From positions 124,001-188,000 of the forward strand of contig ADNK01000489.1 in NCBI GenBank assembly GCA_000320545.1: 64,000 nt of DNA. The letters are read 5' to 3'. The DNA is from Bigelowiella natans CCMP2755. Lineage: Eukaryota; Protista; Cercozoa. Shown here piece by piece: positions 1 to 8,700 of this stretch. The translations under genes were made by a program, and so were the position numbers. Below the pieces are notes generated by a model. The model was not told the origin of the DNA. It worked only from the letters and a program-made list of their open reading frames with translations, and ran no database searches. How positions within the stretch are numbered: the stretch's first letter is position 1; each line of letters begins with the position of its first letter.

Positions 1-1604
1 CTGAATTCAACCGTGATACGATTCTGGAGGTCTGACGGGAAGTAGCAGAGGAGTCCGGCCCCATAGGGTCTGGATTCTCTCCGAACTCAAATCGTCGAGA
101 ACGAGAGCCAAATGGGTAGAAGTTCGGCTTGGTTTTGCCTTTGATTCTCTGCTTCGCATATTTCTTTCTAATCGACTGCTGGATGTTAGAGACTTGGTAC
201 TGCCGAGACTGGCTGAAGTTGTGCTTTATGTGCTGCTCTATTGGAACGCCAAATGCTGTGGTCTGGAACCCACTGCAAAATATCAATTATGGGAAATAAT
301 AATGACAGGAGATTCAGAAGACAATCAATGTGATAGATCAGAAAATCACTCGGGAGAAACACGGAACTAAACTGGAACCCACATCATGGGTAGATAAAAG
401 CTGCATTGTCGAAATTCAGAAAAGAAAAAAAAATAATGAGAGCTATGAGCTGCTCAAAAAGGAAGCAACTGATCAAAATATTAGAAGACAAACTTCCCTT
501 GAATGTATCTAATTCTATTTATGATACGATTATCATATTCAGAACAATGTTGTGTTGTTAATTAGCTCGCCAGGATTTAATAAAAGAAATCACCTTGCAT
601 TGAAGACACCCGGTTGGGTTTTAGTGCTGAGGAGATGGTGCATATTTGACGTTAGATTCGAGAATTTTATAGCCATGGCACGTTCTTGCTCCGCTTGTAG
701 TTTTGCGTAGTTTTCTCTCTCCTTCTCATCTAGGGCTGCCATCATTTTTATACTCTGAAGAAGATAAAGATAGAGAGATAGAAATAAGTCCGTGAGATCT
801 TCACATCTAAACTCATCGAATCAGTTAGAGGTTGAAACAAAAATATGGCTTGAGCTATGTCTATATAAAGGAACCTTCTCGTGGATTGTACGGATATATT
901 CTCTTCTCTTGTAGAAGTCATGTTTTGTCTTCCTACTCGTATAACCCCTCCACCTGGGGATCAAAAGGGAACAAATTAGAGATTATGAAATTCCGGCTCG
1001 TTAAAATTGAAACTTACACTTTCTGGATCTTGGTAGCCAAATAGTTGTAGTATTCGGCGTTTTGCTGCTGGAAATGTTTCGCCTTTATGGCACTGACCCT
1101 ATTTAAAGCAATGCTTAAAGAAACCCAAAAAGATATGTTGCATCCAACTTCGAACCTTTTCCTATCTCGATGACCGCGCCATAACCTTTGCATTTCCGTT
1201 GCTCTTTTGCTGAGAAATATTTGCAAGTGGAGTACAATCATTAGGTCGATCATTAGTGATTGCCTGAAAATGGCTTGTTCTATGGCTCGCACTTACTTCA
1301 AAATTCTGATGTATCTCCTAGCCATCCATCCGCGGACAAACCTTTGTATCCTAACTACTGCCCTCAGCTCATTTGAGCGATTTTTCTCTGTTTCTCTAAA
1401 GAGAGGGATGGGGAGATAGGAAAAATAAATTCCAGTCGAGACAAATATAGTATCCGATAACAATTGGGAATCTAGAACAAAAGTCTACGAAACACTGAAA
1501 GTTTACAGAGAAACACACTAATTTTATCACCTAAGAGCATCAAACAGATCCGCCATCATCTGCATGGGCTCCGACTCTTTGATTCGAAGGTAGGCTAGCG
1601 CCAT
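1..1604 (-). CDS. SPATA17: Spermatogenesis-associated protein 17-like IQ-motif protein (multi-exon; 3' end runs off the window)
   Basis: ATG at 1604 (MALAYLRIKESEPMQMMADLFDAL). Spliced exons give three IQ motifs (VRIQRFVRGWMARR, TEMQRLWRGHRDRK, ATKIQKV-WRGYTSRKTKHDFYKRREYI) and HHLLSTKTQPGVFNA, matching my recall of the SPATA17 signature. GT-AG introns. Confidence 0.85.
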
Positions 1605-2714
1605 TTGTTATTGTCCCTCCTCCTGAGTGGAGCGTAAGACGAAAGATTCGCTGGCACGACGTCTTGCTCTGGGTATTGGCAAATGTGCGTCTCTTCGAGA
1701 AAGTCCAGTAAAACCGGGACCTTCGTTAAGAAACGACAGTCACAGCTTACGCACGATCTCTCGAACTTCGTACGTAGGACACCCTAGCTCTGGCGAACTG
1801 GCCAACGACGGGGGGGGGAAACTCTGGCAGGTATCTGTCAGCCACAATGGATTACTGACGACAACATTGGCGATAGAAAAACGCATGGAATTTTATATTA
1901 GAGACAGATATATTTTGTTGTCGTAAGTGAATAACCCCATGTACTCGATCTCGATTTCGATCCAAGGAAGGATGAGATTCGGTCGAAGAAACTCCCGACC
2001 GAAACGGTAGGGGGAAACGCTCCAGCTTAGTATCGTTTTTTGATGTCGCACCTATAAAATCACCTAGATTTTATGCAACACACGGCGACGATAAAGCACG
2101 TCCGAGAAGGATAATGGCTTCCCGCCGGGCGATCCGTGCATAAAGAATAGACGCCGACTTGGACGGAGATGGCTTCTCACTCTTCCTATAGATCGAGTAA
2201 TGTTGAGGCGAAGAAGCGACAAGGGTAATAATCAGTGGAGGGGGTTTCTCTCCTCAGCCAGCCTGCCTCTAATTGTTTGCGTAGCATTGCAACTTCCGAA
2301 CCACCGGATGACACTACGTTGCAGCGATCATTCATTATCGGTGTAGTAAGTAGGTTCTCAAGTTTTTATTTAAAATAAGAGGAAGACTTTGTAATGGTGT
2401 CTTCATTCCGGTTGGTAATATGGCGTAGGCAGGCGCTGCACGATGAAGATATTTGTAAATATGTATTTGTATTTGTTTGAACTTTACGAATGAGAACGTA
2501 CCATCGTGCCGAGTAGGGAGTTTGTTAATGAGGGGAAACCAGCTTCGGCTCCGTTGCAAAATTTCAAGCCTTGCCATCCATTCGGTAAGTTAAATAAAAG
2601 TTATACGAAAATATCGTCACACACATCGGACGGGTGGGCTTTTATATCCATCCTAACTAGATGCAACAATGTTCATACACAGTGACGAATTATTGATATG
2701 TGTACACTCTTTAG

Positions 2715-2935
2715 GGCTAGCATCACAATCATCATCGTCCTCATTATCGTCCAATGTAGCAGCAGCTTCTACTGCTGCTACTGCTGCTGCTACTACCACT
2801 ACCACTGCCTCGAACTCATCCTCACCCTTGCTTACTTCATCGCCAATGTCATCGTTGGTGTCAAGTACAAAGCAAGATAGTGCTGCTGCCGCCGTGTTTC
2901 CACTCAAGGTTGTCAGCAGAAGCATTCATAATATG

Positions 2936-2987
<52 letters not shown>

Positions 2988-3113
2988 ACATATATGCTCC
3001 CATTGAACACTTCCATTTCCTCCATCAATGCAGGCTGTATCTTCTCATATTACTCATTTGAGTGGAGTTAGTCCAACAAAGGACGCTAGCATCTTTATGG
3101 CCGCTGCTCTAAC

Positions 3114-3148
<35 letters not shown>

Positions 3149-3494
3149 TGTTAAAGTTGCCCTGAACATGTGCTTTGTGCGCATTTGTAGCGCTGCTCCT
3201 CCTTGGTTTTATCTTCCATTGTAAGTTCAAGTATTTATACGTATCGTAGCAAATCGCTACAGAACTGTTATCCAAAGCCCGAGCCAATGGCATAGAGGGG
3301 GGAGAAGGCAGGTTGTTGCGTAGTCCTGGGTCTCTCACAATCACTAATAATCCATGTTGCTGCACTCTTCCTCTTGTTCTGGGCCTTTTCCTTTATCCTG
3401 CTTACTAAGTAGTATATATAATGCTCATCTTGACGAAAGTTGTCACAAGGCTTCCATATCTTTGCAGACTTTTCCATCCTCTTTCTCGTTCTCC

Positions 3495-3575
<81 letters not shown>

Positions 3576-4610
3576 CAAATGCTTTGACTTCCTACCTACT
3601 CCCCTCTTCGTTCGTTATGGTGTTTGTTGTTCAGCGAGGAGGCAACAGCAGCCGACCCCGTCAGCAGCGACGGCAGCAGCAGCAGCAGCAAACAACGGGT
3701 GATAATCAACCCCAAAATGGTCTTTCAAACGCTCCAAGATGTCCCACGTAATAATACATAAAAGAGAAAGTGGTTGGTTGTTGGTAACGCTAGTCTGCGA
3801 CAACTACAACACAACAACAACAACAACAACGACGACGACGACGATGTGATCCTATCCATGCCATTGCTTCTACCACTGTCGCCATCCATGCACTTCACAG
3901 CAGATATAGCACAAGATCTGCCTAAACACACCTTTCGCCTTTACCCCTGCTACTGCTACTGCTACTACTACAGACCTGAAAGAGATGCTACTTCGTGGCA
4001 AAGCAGCAATGGCAGCTAAAGGGCAAGAGAGGCACAAGCGAAAACGGGCTATTCGTGCCAACAGCAACAGTAGTAATATACCGGGAATAACAGCAAAACC
4101 GGTTCGCTCAACAGCAGGCATGCTCCAGCAGCAAGCGTCACAATCATCCTCATCCTCTTCCTCCTCCTTCTCAGCGGAGGCAACAAGAGAAGGCGGGAAG
4201 AGACGAATTCATATCATTGAGGAGGGGAGAGTAGAAAACGAAAAGAATGGAGAGAATAAGAGAAGGAAAATGGAGGAAGATGATGATGATGAGGATGAGG
4301 ATGAGGAGGAGAGGGAGGAGGAAGAAGGAACACCGATTGGGAATGATGTGATGAGTATAAAAAGAAGAAGAAGAAGAATCAACAGCAGCAGTAGCAGCAG
4401 GGGGTCATCATCATTACGTCCCCTCCTCGGATTGCCTCCTCATGCTCCTTCATCAGCATCAACAGCTATATCCTCCTCCTCCTCCTCCTCCTCCTCCTTC
4501 TCCTCCTCCTCCTCACCATCACAATCACAACATATGATGAAATTTCCGTCCCCAATGGCTTTAATGGTCGACGGAAACTTGGGGGCAGGAAAAACTACCG
4601 CGGCGCACGT

Positions 4611-4647
<37 letters not shown>

Positions 4648-5618
4648 TCTCTTTGTATAATGTACATATATAGCTAGGTGCCTCCTGTTTTTATGTAAAT
4701 CGATCAGAAGTAGTTGCCATGTTGTTGTTCCTCCTCCTCCTCCTCCTCCTCCTCCTCCTCCTCCCCCTCCCACGACCCGACTGCTCTAATTTGGATTTTG
4801 CTCCTCGCTGTGTGCCGTCTTCTATTTTGCTACTTCGCCCTCGTGTTGTTTGTTGTCGTTGTTGTTGTTGCCATTAACCGCCTTTGTTATTGCTCAGATG
4901 CTGTGCAAGCTATTGAACACTTCGAAACTGCTGAGGGCTGTAGGAGGCACCACTCACGACCTGTTCTTGGAGGACACAACTTGCCTCCCTGTCTCACAGT
5001 CAATGCTGCTGCTTCATCATGTAAAGACCACGCTGCTGCCTAACTAGCGTATTAGAGTTAGCAGTAGTAGCAGCTTGCAGCTCTTCTCTGTCTCAAATGA
5101 TGAACTACTACTATGAGCCAATCGTGCGTTGTTGTTGCCACCCCCTCCCTAATCCTCCGTCTCACCCATCTTCCAGGGCAGTTTCAGGGAACAGCTCTAT
5201 GGATACATTGTCTCGCTTTCAACACAACTAGCACTCACGCTTAAGAGGTAGTAAGTAGTAGTAGTAGTTGTAGTTGTAGTAGTAGCAGCAGCAGTATTAG
5301 TAGCAGTAGTACACGTTGATTTTTAATCCGATACAAAAGTGAATCGATGTCTTGATTGTAATGATTCCAATGTTATTTCTCTTCTATCCTTCTTCTCATC
5401 CCTTCCTCCTCCGCCTCTCTGTTCTCGCAAGATGCGAGGTTATCAGCAAGAGGAGATGTAGCGATAAACGACACAAATCGACATCGTCATTTTGCTGTAT
5501 TCTGGTCAGTTCGTACGACATTCAAATCTGTCCATGTGTTTTCGTGTGTGCGTGTTTGTGCTTATTGAAGCACATCTATTCTCTCTCTCTCTCTCTCTCT
5601 CTCCCTTTCTCTCTTTCT

Positions 5619-5663
<45 letters not shown>

Positions 5664-7227
5664 ACACTCACACACACTCACGGGAGAGCAGCACGACGAA
5701 GTCATTATCGTGATCTCTTGACAAATGTGCTACGGGTTTGTTTGTTTGTTTGTTTGTTTGCTGCCTTGTCTTCAGGATCGATCGCCTTTGTCACTTGATG
5801 GGCTGATGATATACGGTGTTTGCGAGGGTATCATCACGAAAAGCCAGGCAAGCCAACTAGACAACGATAAACCACTACCACTATCATCAACATCACCAGA
5901 CAACAACCCGCATATATTTGGATTTGCAATCTCCCGTGAGCGTGTGCGTGTGCTCGCTTTGCTGTCCCTCTTCTAGTAATCATGCCGCTCTCCACGACTT
6001 TTGCTTCTTCTTCTTCTTCTTCTTCTTATTATTATTATTATTCTCTTCAGTTTGAAATGTTCTCCGCACAGCGAGACAGCATATGGACGCAGTGGAATCA
6101 GGTTGGCACCACGTCATCATCACATCCATCTCCATCACAATCACTGGTTGCATCATGCGCTTGGTTCTGCTGCTGCGGCTTCTTCTCCTTCTTCTTCTTC
6201 TTCTTCTTCTTCTTCTTCTTCTTTCTCACACTTGATTATTATCAATCACCACCAGGAGGAGAAGAATGCCCTTCACACGATGTTGCTGTACATCGATAGC
6301 GAACCGTGTGTGTGCAGGACAAACCTCACTCGCCGGCAGATGCTGCTTAATGATCACCTTGGGGTAGTAAGTAGTAGTAGTAGTAGTAGCAGCAGCAGCA
6401 GCAGCAGTAGCAGTAGAAGAACCGCAATTAACGTTTTCATCAATCACCAGCTGACGAATTCAGTCAATCGTGCACTCACCATGCGCTTTGCCAGGGAAAT
6501 GGAAGAGGAGGAGGAGGAGGAGGAGGAGGAGTGGGACAACGGGCAATAAAGAAGGAGGACAAGGAAGATAATAAGGGGAACGACAATCATAATGCAGATC
6601 AACGACGACGTGGCATTAGTAACCAAAGTGGAAGAAAGAGGAGCTACACCAAGAGGAGTGCTGCCGCAATTCCGAGCAGCAGCAGCATGATGGTCCCCTG
6701 CTCAATGGAGGTCATCATGGAGCGTCTAGATGAGGCAAACTTCCTTCGGATCATCAGCTTACTCTTGGTCGAGGAGGAGGAGGAGGAGGAGGGGGAGGAG
6801 GAGGGCGATGATGATGATGATGATGACGACGATGACGAGGCAAACCAAAGTATTATTCGAGGAGCTGCTTTAGGAGGAGAACAACCAAAGCCAATGATGG
6901 CAAAAGAGGCAGGTAGTGCCACAGCAGCTGCTGCTGCAGGCCCCATCGCACGACGAGGAGGAGGAGCAGGAGGACAACGAAAACCACGGAAGAAACGATC
7001 ACCACAACTACGTCGTCGTGGTGGTGGTGGCGGTACAGCTGCTGCTGCTGCGGATGGGTGCTACTTCTCTCTGAAGAACAGAAACAACAACAACAACAAC
7101 AACGTGTGCATTCTCTTGGAGTGCGACTTGAGCCGCCAAGAGCTCGCTACTTGCCCTCGCTGCGGTTAGTGATAAATGATCCATCCTGCTGCTGCTGTTG
7201 CTGTTGCTGCTACTACTACTGCTGTGT

Positions 7228-7268
<41 letters not shown>

Positions 7269-7308
7269 TGGATTTAGATCTACTATTTTCCAATCAATAT
7301 ACATATAT

Positions 7309-7369
<61 letters not shown>

Positions 7370-7904
7370 CGTGTGTTGTTATGACGATGATGTTCCTTGC
7401 TGACCTACAATACATCTTTTCTGCTCATTGTTCTCAGACATCATGCTTGACGGCTCAAAAGTGAGTCAATCGTCTTCCTCCAGAAAGTCTTCATCAATGC
7501 CTGCATCGTCATCTGTGGGGTGGAGGGTCCTGGAGATGCTGCTCGCATCGTTGCCTAGCAGCAGTAGTAGTAGTAGTAGTAGTATCAACGCTGCCATGAC
7601 GAAGAAGAAGAAGAGGAGGAGGCACAGTCAAGCCTGTGAGAATGGGGGAAATGCCGATGATGACGACGATGACGACGACGACGATGATGATGACGATGGA
7701 GGTGATAAAGATGCTCGAGGTCGTCACGGTGCGAGAGGGATCACGAGCACTAGCAACAACAGCAGCAGTGGTAGCGTCTTTGGCCAAGCTGGAGATGTCA
7801 GGCTAAGGTACCACAGAGGAGCAGTGGAGGAGGACGAGGAGGAGCAGGAAATCTAGTCGCACTTCTCCTCCTCACACTTCTTTCTTCTTAATGTGTTTCC
7901 TTTC

Positions 7905-7949
<45 letters not shown>

Positions 7950-8700
7950 AGACACACACGCATCTATTTGCATGACTGCTCTGTTTGATCGTCCCGCTGT
8001 AATAATCTAGTGTTAATAGACTGGTGCTCTGCTCTTTGCTCATGTTCGGTTGGAGCCCTCTAGAGAACATTGGAGGAGGAGGAGGAGGAGGAGGAGGAGG
8101 AGGAAGAGGAAGCAGTAAATTGATTCGTGGTGATATTCTGATCAAGTGCGTTGGGTGTCCGCTCCATATTGATGATGATGAGGAGGAGGAGGATGAGGAG
8201 ATGAAGAGAACGAAACCAGCCGTGGGGCGAGCTGATGAAGCTGAGGAGGCGGAGGAGGAGGAGGAGGAGGAGGAGGAGGAGGAAGTGGAAAAGACGAAGG
8301 GACTGCAAGGAGCGAAGCAACAAGTTGGAGGGAGAGGAGGAGGAGGAGAGGAGAAGGAGAAAGAAGAGACCCACACGGAAACGAGAAGTTCAGTTGATAA
8401 CAACTACAACTACAAGAAGAAGAAGAAGAAGAATAGATTGACCGATGTCTTAAAGGTGTGCTACCAGTCATCCGAGGACGTTTTACGAGCTTACAAAGCA
8501 CTGATCGAGCTCAGGTGCTGCTGCTGTGCATGTGCCCATGCATGTACTTGCGTGCATTTGCGGATATATAGCTCTCATCATCATCATCATCATCATCTTA
8601 GCCTCCTGCTATCTAGAGCTTCCTCGGTCGTAATGTTGTCGAGTCGCCTCCTTGTGATTGCTGCCAAAAATATTTGGATGATGCTTTAAACTGCGAGTAG
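2715..8700 (+). CDS. Multi-exon protein: N-terminal H2A-like histone fold, low-complexity linker, deoxynucleoside kinase (dNK)-like P-loop domain, unassigned C-terminus; true start probably upstream of 2715
   Basis: Phase-consistent exons ..2908, 3034-3114, 3250-3311, 3635-3747 and 3974-4608 give VFPLKAVSSHITHLSGVSPTKDASIFMAAALTQIATELLSKA...KQRVIINPKMVFQTLQDVPHLKEMLL. Downstream exons give dNK motifs in order: DGNLGAGKTT, FLE, YYYEP, SFREQLY, ILDRSPLS, LLYIDSEPCVCR, ERLDEAN. The last exon ends CCQKYLDDALNCE-stop at 8700. Confidence 0.7.

Follow-up and report, generated by a model that had tools for sequence, protein, structure and literature searches.

We analysed a window of 64,000 nucleotides from the genome of the chlorarachniophyte Bigelowiella natans CCMP2755 (assembly GCA_000320545.1, contig ADNK01000489.1, positions 124,001 to 188,000 of the forward strand), and all positions below are counted from the first letter of that window. 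The plus strand was found to carry a gene of at least 15 exons, the coding sequence of which starts at an ATG at position 2169 and reaches at least position 7585 according to transcript contigs; judging from matches to an orthologous protein, the gene probably extends to about 8516. The encoded protein, which probably exceeds 930 amino acids (aa), is arranged in the following order: a low-complexity N-terminus; a very divergent domain predicted to adopt an H2A-type fold, in which helices 1 to 3, the second of them long, are separated by loops 1 and 2, the latter with a Ser-rich insert, and are followed by a C-terminal helix; a basic/acidic linker of approximately 180 aa; a divergent P-loop domain of the deoxynucleoside kinase (dNK) family; and a conserved Cys-containing C-terminal region. 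Our preferred reading, to which we attach moderate confidence, is that this is a single-copy, expressed nuclear gene that fuses a divergent H2A-type histone fold to a dNK-family P-loop domain and whose product would operate through a handshake dimer.

Transcript contigs from three runs (three studies), together with one raw-read RNA run, were aligned over positions 2100-8000 of the window. A spliced contig of approximately 1166 nucleotides recurred in three runs and comprised exons 1 to 6 of Table 1 in full and exon 7 from 3974 to about 4495. The contig joints (2223->2516, 2583->2714, 2906->3032 and 3308->3632) all had GT..AG ends, and the contig record table additionally listed 3747 as spliced to 3974. 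In a first-pass annotation of this DNA, the five exons that encode the histone-like region and lead into the P-loop had been proposed with junctions 2908|3034, 3114|3250, 3311|3635 and 3747|3974 and with phases 0, 0, 2 and 1. The RNA data bear out this splicing of the histone-like exons: the first, third and fourth junctions are exact and were seen as GT..AG joints in the spliced contigs of three runs, and the second was seen in the independent JGI transcript contig L004, which matched the exons at 98-100%. All five exons were right to the base, and the phases were correct.

When exon 7 was used to search 1.84 billion representative proteins, it matched P0001 (396 aa, E-value 2e-92), a protein encoded on L004 (JGI sample 3300017095). 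The N-terminus of P0001 is the peptide read from the ATG at 2169, and the protein agreed with the exon model residue for residue; the histone-like exons showed zero differences between the window and L004, whereas other exons do differ. Past a (TCC)n run, L004 is chimeric; its positions 1155-2032 hold unrelated sequence with a 240-aa open reading frame (ORF) on the opposite strand, the final 25 or so residues of P0001 are foreign to the fusion gene, and L004 beyond the run yielded no dNK part. The downstream half of the gene was covered by a second contig, which contained exons 8 and 9, the sequence from 5432 onwards, and a segment ending at 6101 that was joined to 6256-6359, and by further contigs covering 6542-6757 and 6843-7164, the last spliced to 7438-7585.

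The reading frame, as checked exon by exon, is open from the ATG at 2169 across all junctions into the exon beginning at 7438. In particular, exon 7 is one open frame from the histone-like helix LKEMLL to the P-loop DGNLGAGKTT, in agreement with the earlier claim that both parts share a frame, and the linker between them is rich in basic, acidic and Ser residues with KRKR and KRRRRR runs. The boundaries of exons 10 to 14 were set from the joints, the contig-record lengths and splice-site logic. Downstream of exon 15, ortholog matches were found at 8096-8179 and 8462-8515; for these conserved pieces to belong to the gene, splicing has to remove an in-frame stop at 7854, and too many combinations of splice sites between the exon at 7438 and the pieces at 8064-8516 are compatible to fix the junction. 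The gene had previously been delimited at 2880-6770; these bounds differ from those of the present model, which has three upstream exons (exons 1 to 3) and coding sequence past 6770.

The first-pass annotation had also suggested a search of chlorarachniophyte transcriptomes for the same fusion, and it was indeed found in a second genus. Using the histone-like part of P0001, we identified P0003 (636 aa) in the Chlorarachnion reptans transcriptome MMETSP0109, a transcript that carries both domains in one ORF. Pfam recognised the dNK domain in P0003 residues 229-386 (E-value 7.3e-9; 36.1 bits against a curated cut-off of 27). Aligned singly, the window exons found their best matches to P0003 in strict consecutive order along residues 81-612, and eight window pieces outscored all 300 shuffles. 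The histone-like exons were the best-conserved part (45 of 68 residues identical, compared with 62 of 153 in the dNK exons), and the N-terminal domain was 66% identical between the two proteins. As judged from these alignments, the fusion is real and common to two chlorarachniophyte genera, which speaks against an assembly chimera in either of them. P0003 had no match in the 91-Mb genome outside the fusion locus, and the gene is therefore single-copy. No further relatives were found among JGI metagenome contigs, which were searched with a degenerate P-loop DNA pattern and by a protein-alignment scan, and a length-restricted search for homologous proteins with exon 7 as the query returned nothing in the length range. 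In the same C. reptans transcriptome, P0004 (459 aa, PF05050) shares a 100% identical stretch that covers 13% of the length of P0003; overlapping assembly or a chimeric contig in MMETSP0109 is the probable cause.

Table 1. Exons of the histone-fold/dNK fusion gene and probable further coding sequence, in window positions.
Feature	Position	Strand	Content	Support
Exon 1	2100..2224	+	5' untranslated region and ATG 2169	contigs stop near 2100; P0001 starts with the peptide from 2169
Exon 2	2517..2584	+		contig joints on both sides; L004
Exon 3	2715..2908	+	Ser/Ala/Thr-rich low-complexity N-terminus; ends AAAAVFPLK, the start of helix 1	contigs; L004
Exon 4	3034..3114	+	helix 1, loop 1, first half of helix 2	18/27 identical to P0003 81-107
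Exon 5	3250..3311	+	last part of helix 2, first part of the loop 2 insert	L004; P0003 alignment
Exon 6	3635..3747	+	Ser-rich insert, loop 2 (QRVIINP), helix 3	19/27 identical to P0003 128-154
Exon 7	3974..4608	+	C-terminal helix LKEMLL, linker, P-loop DGNLGAGKTT (4564-4608)	open frame; contig to about 4495
Exon 8	4898..5020	+	dNK-like; conserved FLE..CLP motif (candidate general-base Glu)	contigs; P0003 alignment
Exon 9	5177..5247	+	dNK-like SF.EQLY motif	joints 5020->5177 and 5245->5430
Exon 10	5432..5504	+		start from joint 5245->5430; end inferred from contig-record length, GT donor and frame
Exon 11	5776..5847	+	DRS (dNK ERS motif)	contig-record length; frame; collinear with P0003 319-342
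Exon 12	6051..6101	+		joint 6098->6253; frame
Exon 13	6256..6363	+	strand and lid motif LLYIDSEPCVCRTNLTRRQ	contigs; P0003 alignment, z 11
Exon 14	6495..7164	+	Gly run, basic/acidic insert, helix conserved with P0003 408-425, Cys motif VCILLEC...CPRC (7104-7163)	contigs 6542-6757, 6843-7071 and on to 7164; start inferred from contig ends and frame
Exon 15	7438..7585	+		contig record joins 7164 to 7438; 7585 is the contig limit, not a fixed 3' end
Probable further coding exon(s)	8064..8516	+	KLIRGDILIKCVGCPLH and YQSSEDVLRAYKALIELR	match P0003 547-568 and 595-612

The intron at 5848-6050 opens with GC (GCAAGC) and is apparently a GC-AG intron. Dinucleotide microsatellites of the types (TA)n, (GT)n, (GA)n and (CA)n were present in nearly every intron (2928-2999, 3107-3154, 3500-3575, 4609-4660, 5575-5690, 7235-7370 and 7905-7950). 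Codon repeats of the types (TCC)n, (GAG)n, (AGC)n and (GAT)n were present in the exons, and short-read transcript assemblies break there.

The window exons were searched one at a time, and the natural transcript proteins P0001 and P0003 were used for longer queries. The Walker A sequence GNLGAGKTT lies at 4570-4596 in a confirmed exon and corresponds to GNVGCGKTT in P0003, each of the two species having an intact P-loop. The motifs SF..QLY (5177-5247), DRS (5776-5847) and LLYID..P..C (6256-6363), which had been named as dNK motifs beforehand, each fell in an exon with ends compatible with the transcript contigs. A fourth proposed motif, YYYEP (5097-5120), has to be given up because it lies inside the confirmed intron 5021-5176. 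The window copy keeps the P-loop, the candidate general-base Glu (FLE), EQ.Y in place of FQ.Y, DRS as a conservative replacement of ERS, and two lid arginines (R....RR). Phmmer searches of the PDB with P0003 gave a weak full-length match to deoxyadenosine/deoxycytidine kinase (E-value 0.09) and a match of the P-loop only to Drosophila dNK (E-value 0.26), and exon 13 had no match in the same database. The P-loop piece of the window by itself showed weak Pfam matches to TsaE, Zeta and dNK (13.4 bits for dNK), and Pfam searches of the single exons gave nothing beyond generic P-loop matches. The membership of the window copy in the dNK family thus rests on its collinear orthology with P0003.

Compared with dCK, dGK, TK2, Drosophila dNK and the bacterial dAK/dGK enzymes (PF01712), the fusion domain has the P-loop, an FQ-like motif, an ERS-like motif (DRS in the window copy), and a strand followed by an Arg-rich lid in the order typical of the family. 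It differs from them in being very divergent, in a long insert after the lid, in residing inside a protein of more than 900 aa, and in catalytic residues that differ in part from one ortholog to the other; additionally, the stretch between the Glu and FQ motifs is, in both copies, presumably shorter than that of Drosophila dNK by approximately 12 residues. Elsewhere in the genome, we also found a more canonical dNK exon at 1498-1713 of L001 (G000:C1194:21734-21919), which contains W...FQ...VERSPLS and scores 16 bits against PF01712. L001 is probably a second dNK-family gene, and it is a possible source of the fused dNK domain.

The N-terminal domain was examined by structure prediction and language-model comparison. 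In the ESM-Atlas feature search, the best named neighbours were all histone-fold families (CBFD_NFYB_HMF, TFIID-18kDa and CENP-S), with a top score of 0.86 and 170 shared features, a result that the tool rates as a lead. Two AlphaFold2 monomers showed helices of 12, 24 and 10 residues followed by a C-terminal helix (9 or 31 residues) and an insert in loop 2. The top rows of an exhaustive VIA-align search included TAF42/62, TAF9, an archaeal histone, TAF18/28, H2A, macroH2A, CENP-S/X and NC2, and the Atlas shape search returned CENP-X and archaeal histones with TM scores of 0.46-0.65; histone folds were enriched among these shape matches. When residues 92-215 of P0001 were modelled by ESMFold2 with the H2B encoded in the same genome (L012), the predicted dimer had ipSAE values of 0.70, 0.73 and 0.73, while the best of three controls reached 0.00. 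The ipSAE mark, which this dimer passed, was calibrated as one reached by 51 of 78 solved complexes and by 2 of 108 mismatched pairs. The predicted dimer contained approximately 190 contacts, with the runs agreeing in at least 88% of them and a partner pLDDT of 60-62, and its interface was canonical. As in H2A-H2B, the two long helices 2 packed against each other; loop 1 of the new domain, with the first part of its helix 2, faced loop 2 of H2B and the helices beyond it, and its loop 2 faced loop 1 of H2B. As a model, the dimer supports the fold and an H2B-type partner rather than H2B itself, and both the histone fold and its pairing are predictions.

The domain retains, by sequence reading, the FP start, the basic loop 2 residue and the hydrophobic C-terminal helix. 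An H2A docking domain was not seen, a charged linker following LKEMLL instead, and most acidic-patch residues and most of the basic residues of helix 1 were missing. The domain therefore looks, from its residues, more like the non-nucleosomal H2A-type folds of NC2-alpha, NF-YC and POLE4 than like a nucleosomal variant. As in NC2-alpha/DRAP1, NF-YC and POLE4/CHRAC-16 (PF00808), its helix 1 opens with F/L-P, its helix 2 is long, its loop 2 carries a basic residue, its C-terminal helix is hydrophobic and its partner would be expected to be of the H2B type, and its nearest language-model clusters are PF00808 families; unlike them, it has no PF00808 match, carries the loop 2 insert and is joined to an enzyme-family domain. 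In macroH2A, an H2A histone domain is followed by a basic linker and a macro domain, and the fusion protein has its parts in the same order: first an H2A-type fold, next a charged linker, and towards the C-terminus a globular domain that belongs to a nucleotide-binding family. In contrast, the histone domain of macroH2A is a clear H2A by sequence, has a docking domain and is nucleosomal, whereas the fold in the fusion protein is invisible to hidden Markov models (HMMs) and lacks those H2A features. The fusion protein also has a P-loop dNK fold in place of a macro domain, none of which was found by Pfam in the exons searched singly, and additionally has a Cys-rich C-terminal region. Since the nucleosomal features of H2A look absent, the analogy with macroH2A is architectural only; the "macroH2A-style" label given to the gene at first fits the order of parts rather than an established role in nucleosomes.

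Several results weigh against the preferred reading, and most of them concern the fold of the N-terminal domain. Pfam searches of P0001 95-215 and P0003 68-166 gave no match at E-values up to 10, searches of the PDB by phmmer and by a two-sequence profile gave no histone-fold match, and PF00808 matched 23 other places in the genome but not the fusion locus. Alignment by hhalign with the genome's own H2A was in register (FP, helix 1 and helix 2) but had a P of only 0.11, as did that with H2A.Z over 22 columns (22-43 columns across H2A and H2A.Z). A Foldseek search of the PDB with the first monomer model returned noise only. The AlphaFold2 monomers were of low confidence (pLDDT 58 and 50), the VIA-align Z-scores were at most 4.3, where values below 5 are common by chance according to the tool, and the dimer pass can reflect memory of H2A-H2B structures and does not specify the partner. 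With every sequence-based test negative, the models of low confidence and the shape matches weak, the N-terminal region could instead be an unrelated helical dimerisation or linker domain, which would make the protein a lineage-specific long member of the dNK family. We consider this unlikely, as three semi-independent lines from structure prediction and language models agree on a histone fold, the complex controls scored 0.00, and the helix lengths and the positions of loops 1 and 2 fit that fold. It is probable, in our judgement, that the N-terminal domain is a histone fold; the H2A-like fold recognised at first glance is supported by language-model neighbours, shape matches and the H2B dimer model that had been proposed as a check, although Pfam, PDB and hhalign searches are silent and the dimer leaves the identity of the partner unspecified. 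That the domain might go further and be a true nucleosomal H2A variant, so that a macroH2A-like histone carries a kinase fold into nucleosomes, is very doubtful. The FP start, RVIINP (RIIP in H2A) and LKEMLL (LNKLL in H2A) are in register with the genome's own H2A, H2A chains were among the highest identities of the shape matches (19-22%), and the H2B dimer passed; these points are outweighed in our view by zero matches to H2A or Histone HMMs, the missing docking domain, the replacement of most acidic-patch and basic helix 1 residues, an insert of 20-30 residues in loop 2, and the fact that the dimer pass does not tell which family member binds.

The function of the dNK fold and the unity of the product were weighed in the same way. 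The dNK exons of the window remained below Pfam significance one by one, and a six-frame scan of the genome with PF01712 missed the window. Moreover, C. reptans has DVS, a broken motif, instead of ERS or DRS (and ARR in the lid) and is without the base-binding Gln of the FQ motif, and the loss of the ERS Arg and of this Gln in the ortholog argues against a strictly conserved kinase function. It is quite conceivable, though somewhat less likely than not, that the dNK-fold domain is a pseudo-enzyme serving as a nucleotide binder or a scaffold, comparable with NDUFA10, an accessory subunit with a dNK fold in mitochondrial complex I. The shortened stretch between the Glu and FQ motifs, an identity of only about 40% in the dNK exons between genera, and the presence of the more canonical-looking dNK exon in L001 also fit a pseudo-enzyme; the intact P-loop in both species and the DRS, EQ.Y and lid RR residues of the window copy do not. 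NDUFA10 provides a precedent for a dNK fold that is not known to act as a kinase; it is otherwise an unlike protein, sits in another compartment and lacks a histone-fold domain. As for the unity of the product, both transcript contigs end in the (TCC)n run at approximately 4470-4530, where RNA continuity is inferred for Bigelowiella. This break in both assemblies, together with MMKFPSPMALM (three Met codons at 4540-4575) just upstream of the P-loop within exon 7, would suit a promoter or start inside this exon that gives a dNK-only protein, with the histone-like part made separately or as an alternative product. An internal start before the P-loop could in principle yield such a product, but we regard two products as a poor explanation of the locus: exon 7 is open throughout, the two contigs have similar depths (78.8 and 75.1 in X1; 14.6 and 25.5 in X2), and the C. 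reptans transcript holds both domains in one ORF.

Under the preferred reading of one fusion protein, the histone-fold domain would form a handshake heterodimer with an H2B-type partner, candidates being H2B itself or an NF-YB, NC2-beta or POLE3-like protein. Such a dimer would bring the dNK-fold module to complexes bound to DNA or chromatin, presumably in the host nucleus, where the module may phosphorylate deoxynucleosides locally or may serve only as a nucleotide-binding module. In the first-pass annotation, the protein had been proposed to act as a chromatin-tethered salvage enzyme or sensor, a role that is conjectural.

The Cys motifs C....C........CP.C (7104-7163) and CVGCPLH (8140-8160) in the C-terminal region are conserved with P0003 484-504 and 564-569, and they may form a zinc-binding module. 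Pfam gave zero matches for this Cys region, and the C-terminal region of P0003 reached a score of 0.80 in an Atlas feature search, no better than chance. No N-terminal signal peptide was recognised in either ortholog by sequence reading, and a nucleomorph- or plastid-targeted histone is unlikely for that reason. In this genome, the canonical core histone genes lack introns and form divergent pairs, H2A/H4 on C634 (L011) and H2B/H3 on C1317 (L012). The upstream neighbour of the fusion gene (1014-1463, minus strand) is unrelated to it and has several IQ-like motifs (IQRFVRGW and ATKIQK).

Histone folds fused to other globular domains are rare, and macroH2A is the classic case. In the literature searched, no paper was found that contains both "histone fold" and "deoxynucleoside kinase", and dNK goes unmentioned in a survey of chromatin evolution across eukaryotes in which Bigelowiella was included; the combination had been put forward as one not known to be described. 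We regard the gene as a new domain architecture in which two known folds are combined, so far in chlorarachniophytes only. Histone surveys based on HMMs miss folds as divergent as that of the fusion protein. If the dNK domain is inactive, the protein would still be a lineage-specific candidate for a chromatin-associated factor, albeit a more ordinary one. At the other end of the range, there is a slim chance that it is a genuine chromatin component, namely a variant of the H2A class, paired with H2B, that takes a catalytically active dNK into nucleosomes or into histone-fold complexes linked to replication or repair; if true, an enzyme-bearing histone variant would have evolved independently of macroH2A. 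As a second independent architecture of this kind, the fusion would constitute a natural experiment on the coupling of nucleotide metabolism or sensing to DNA-bound complexes.

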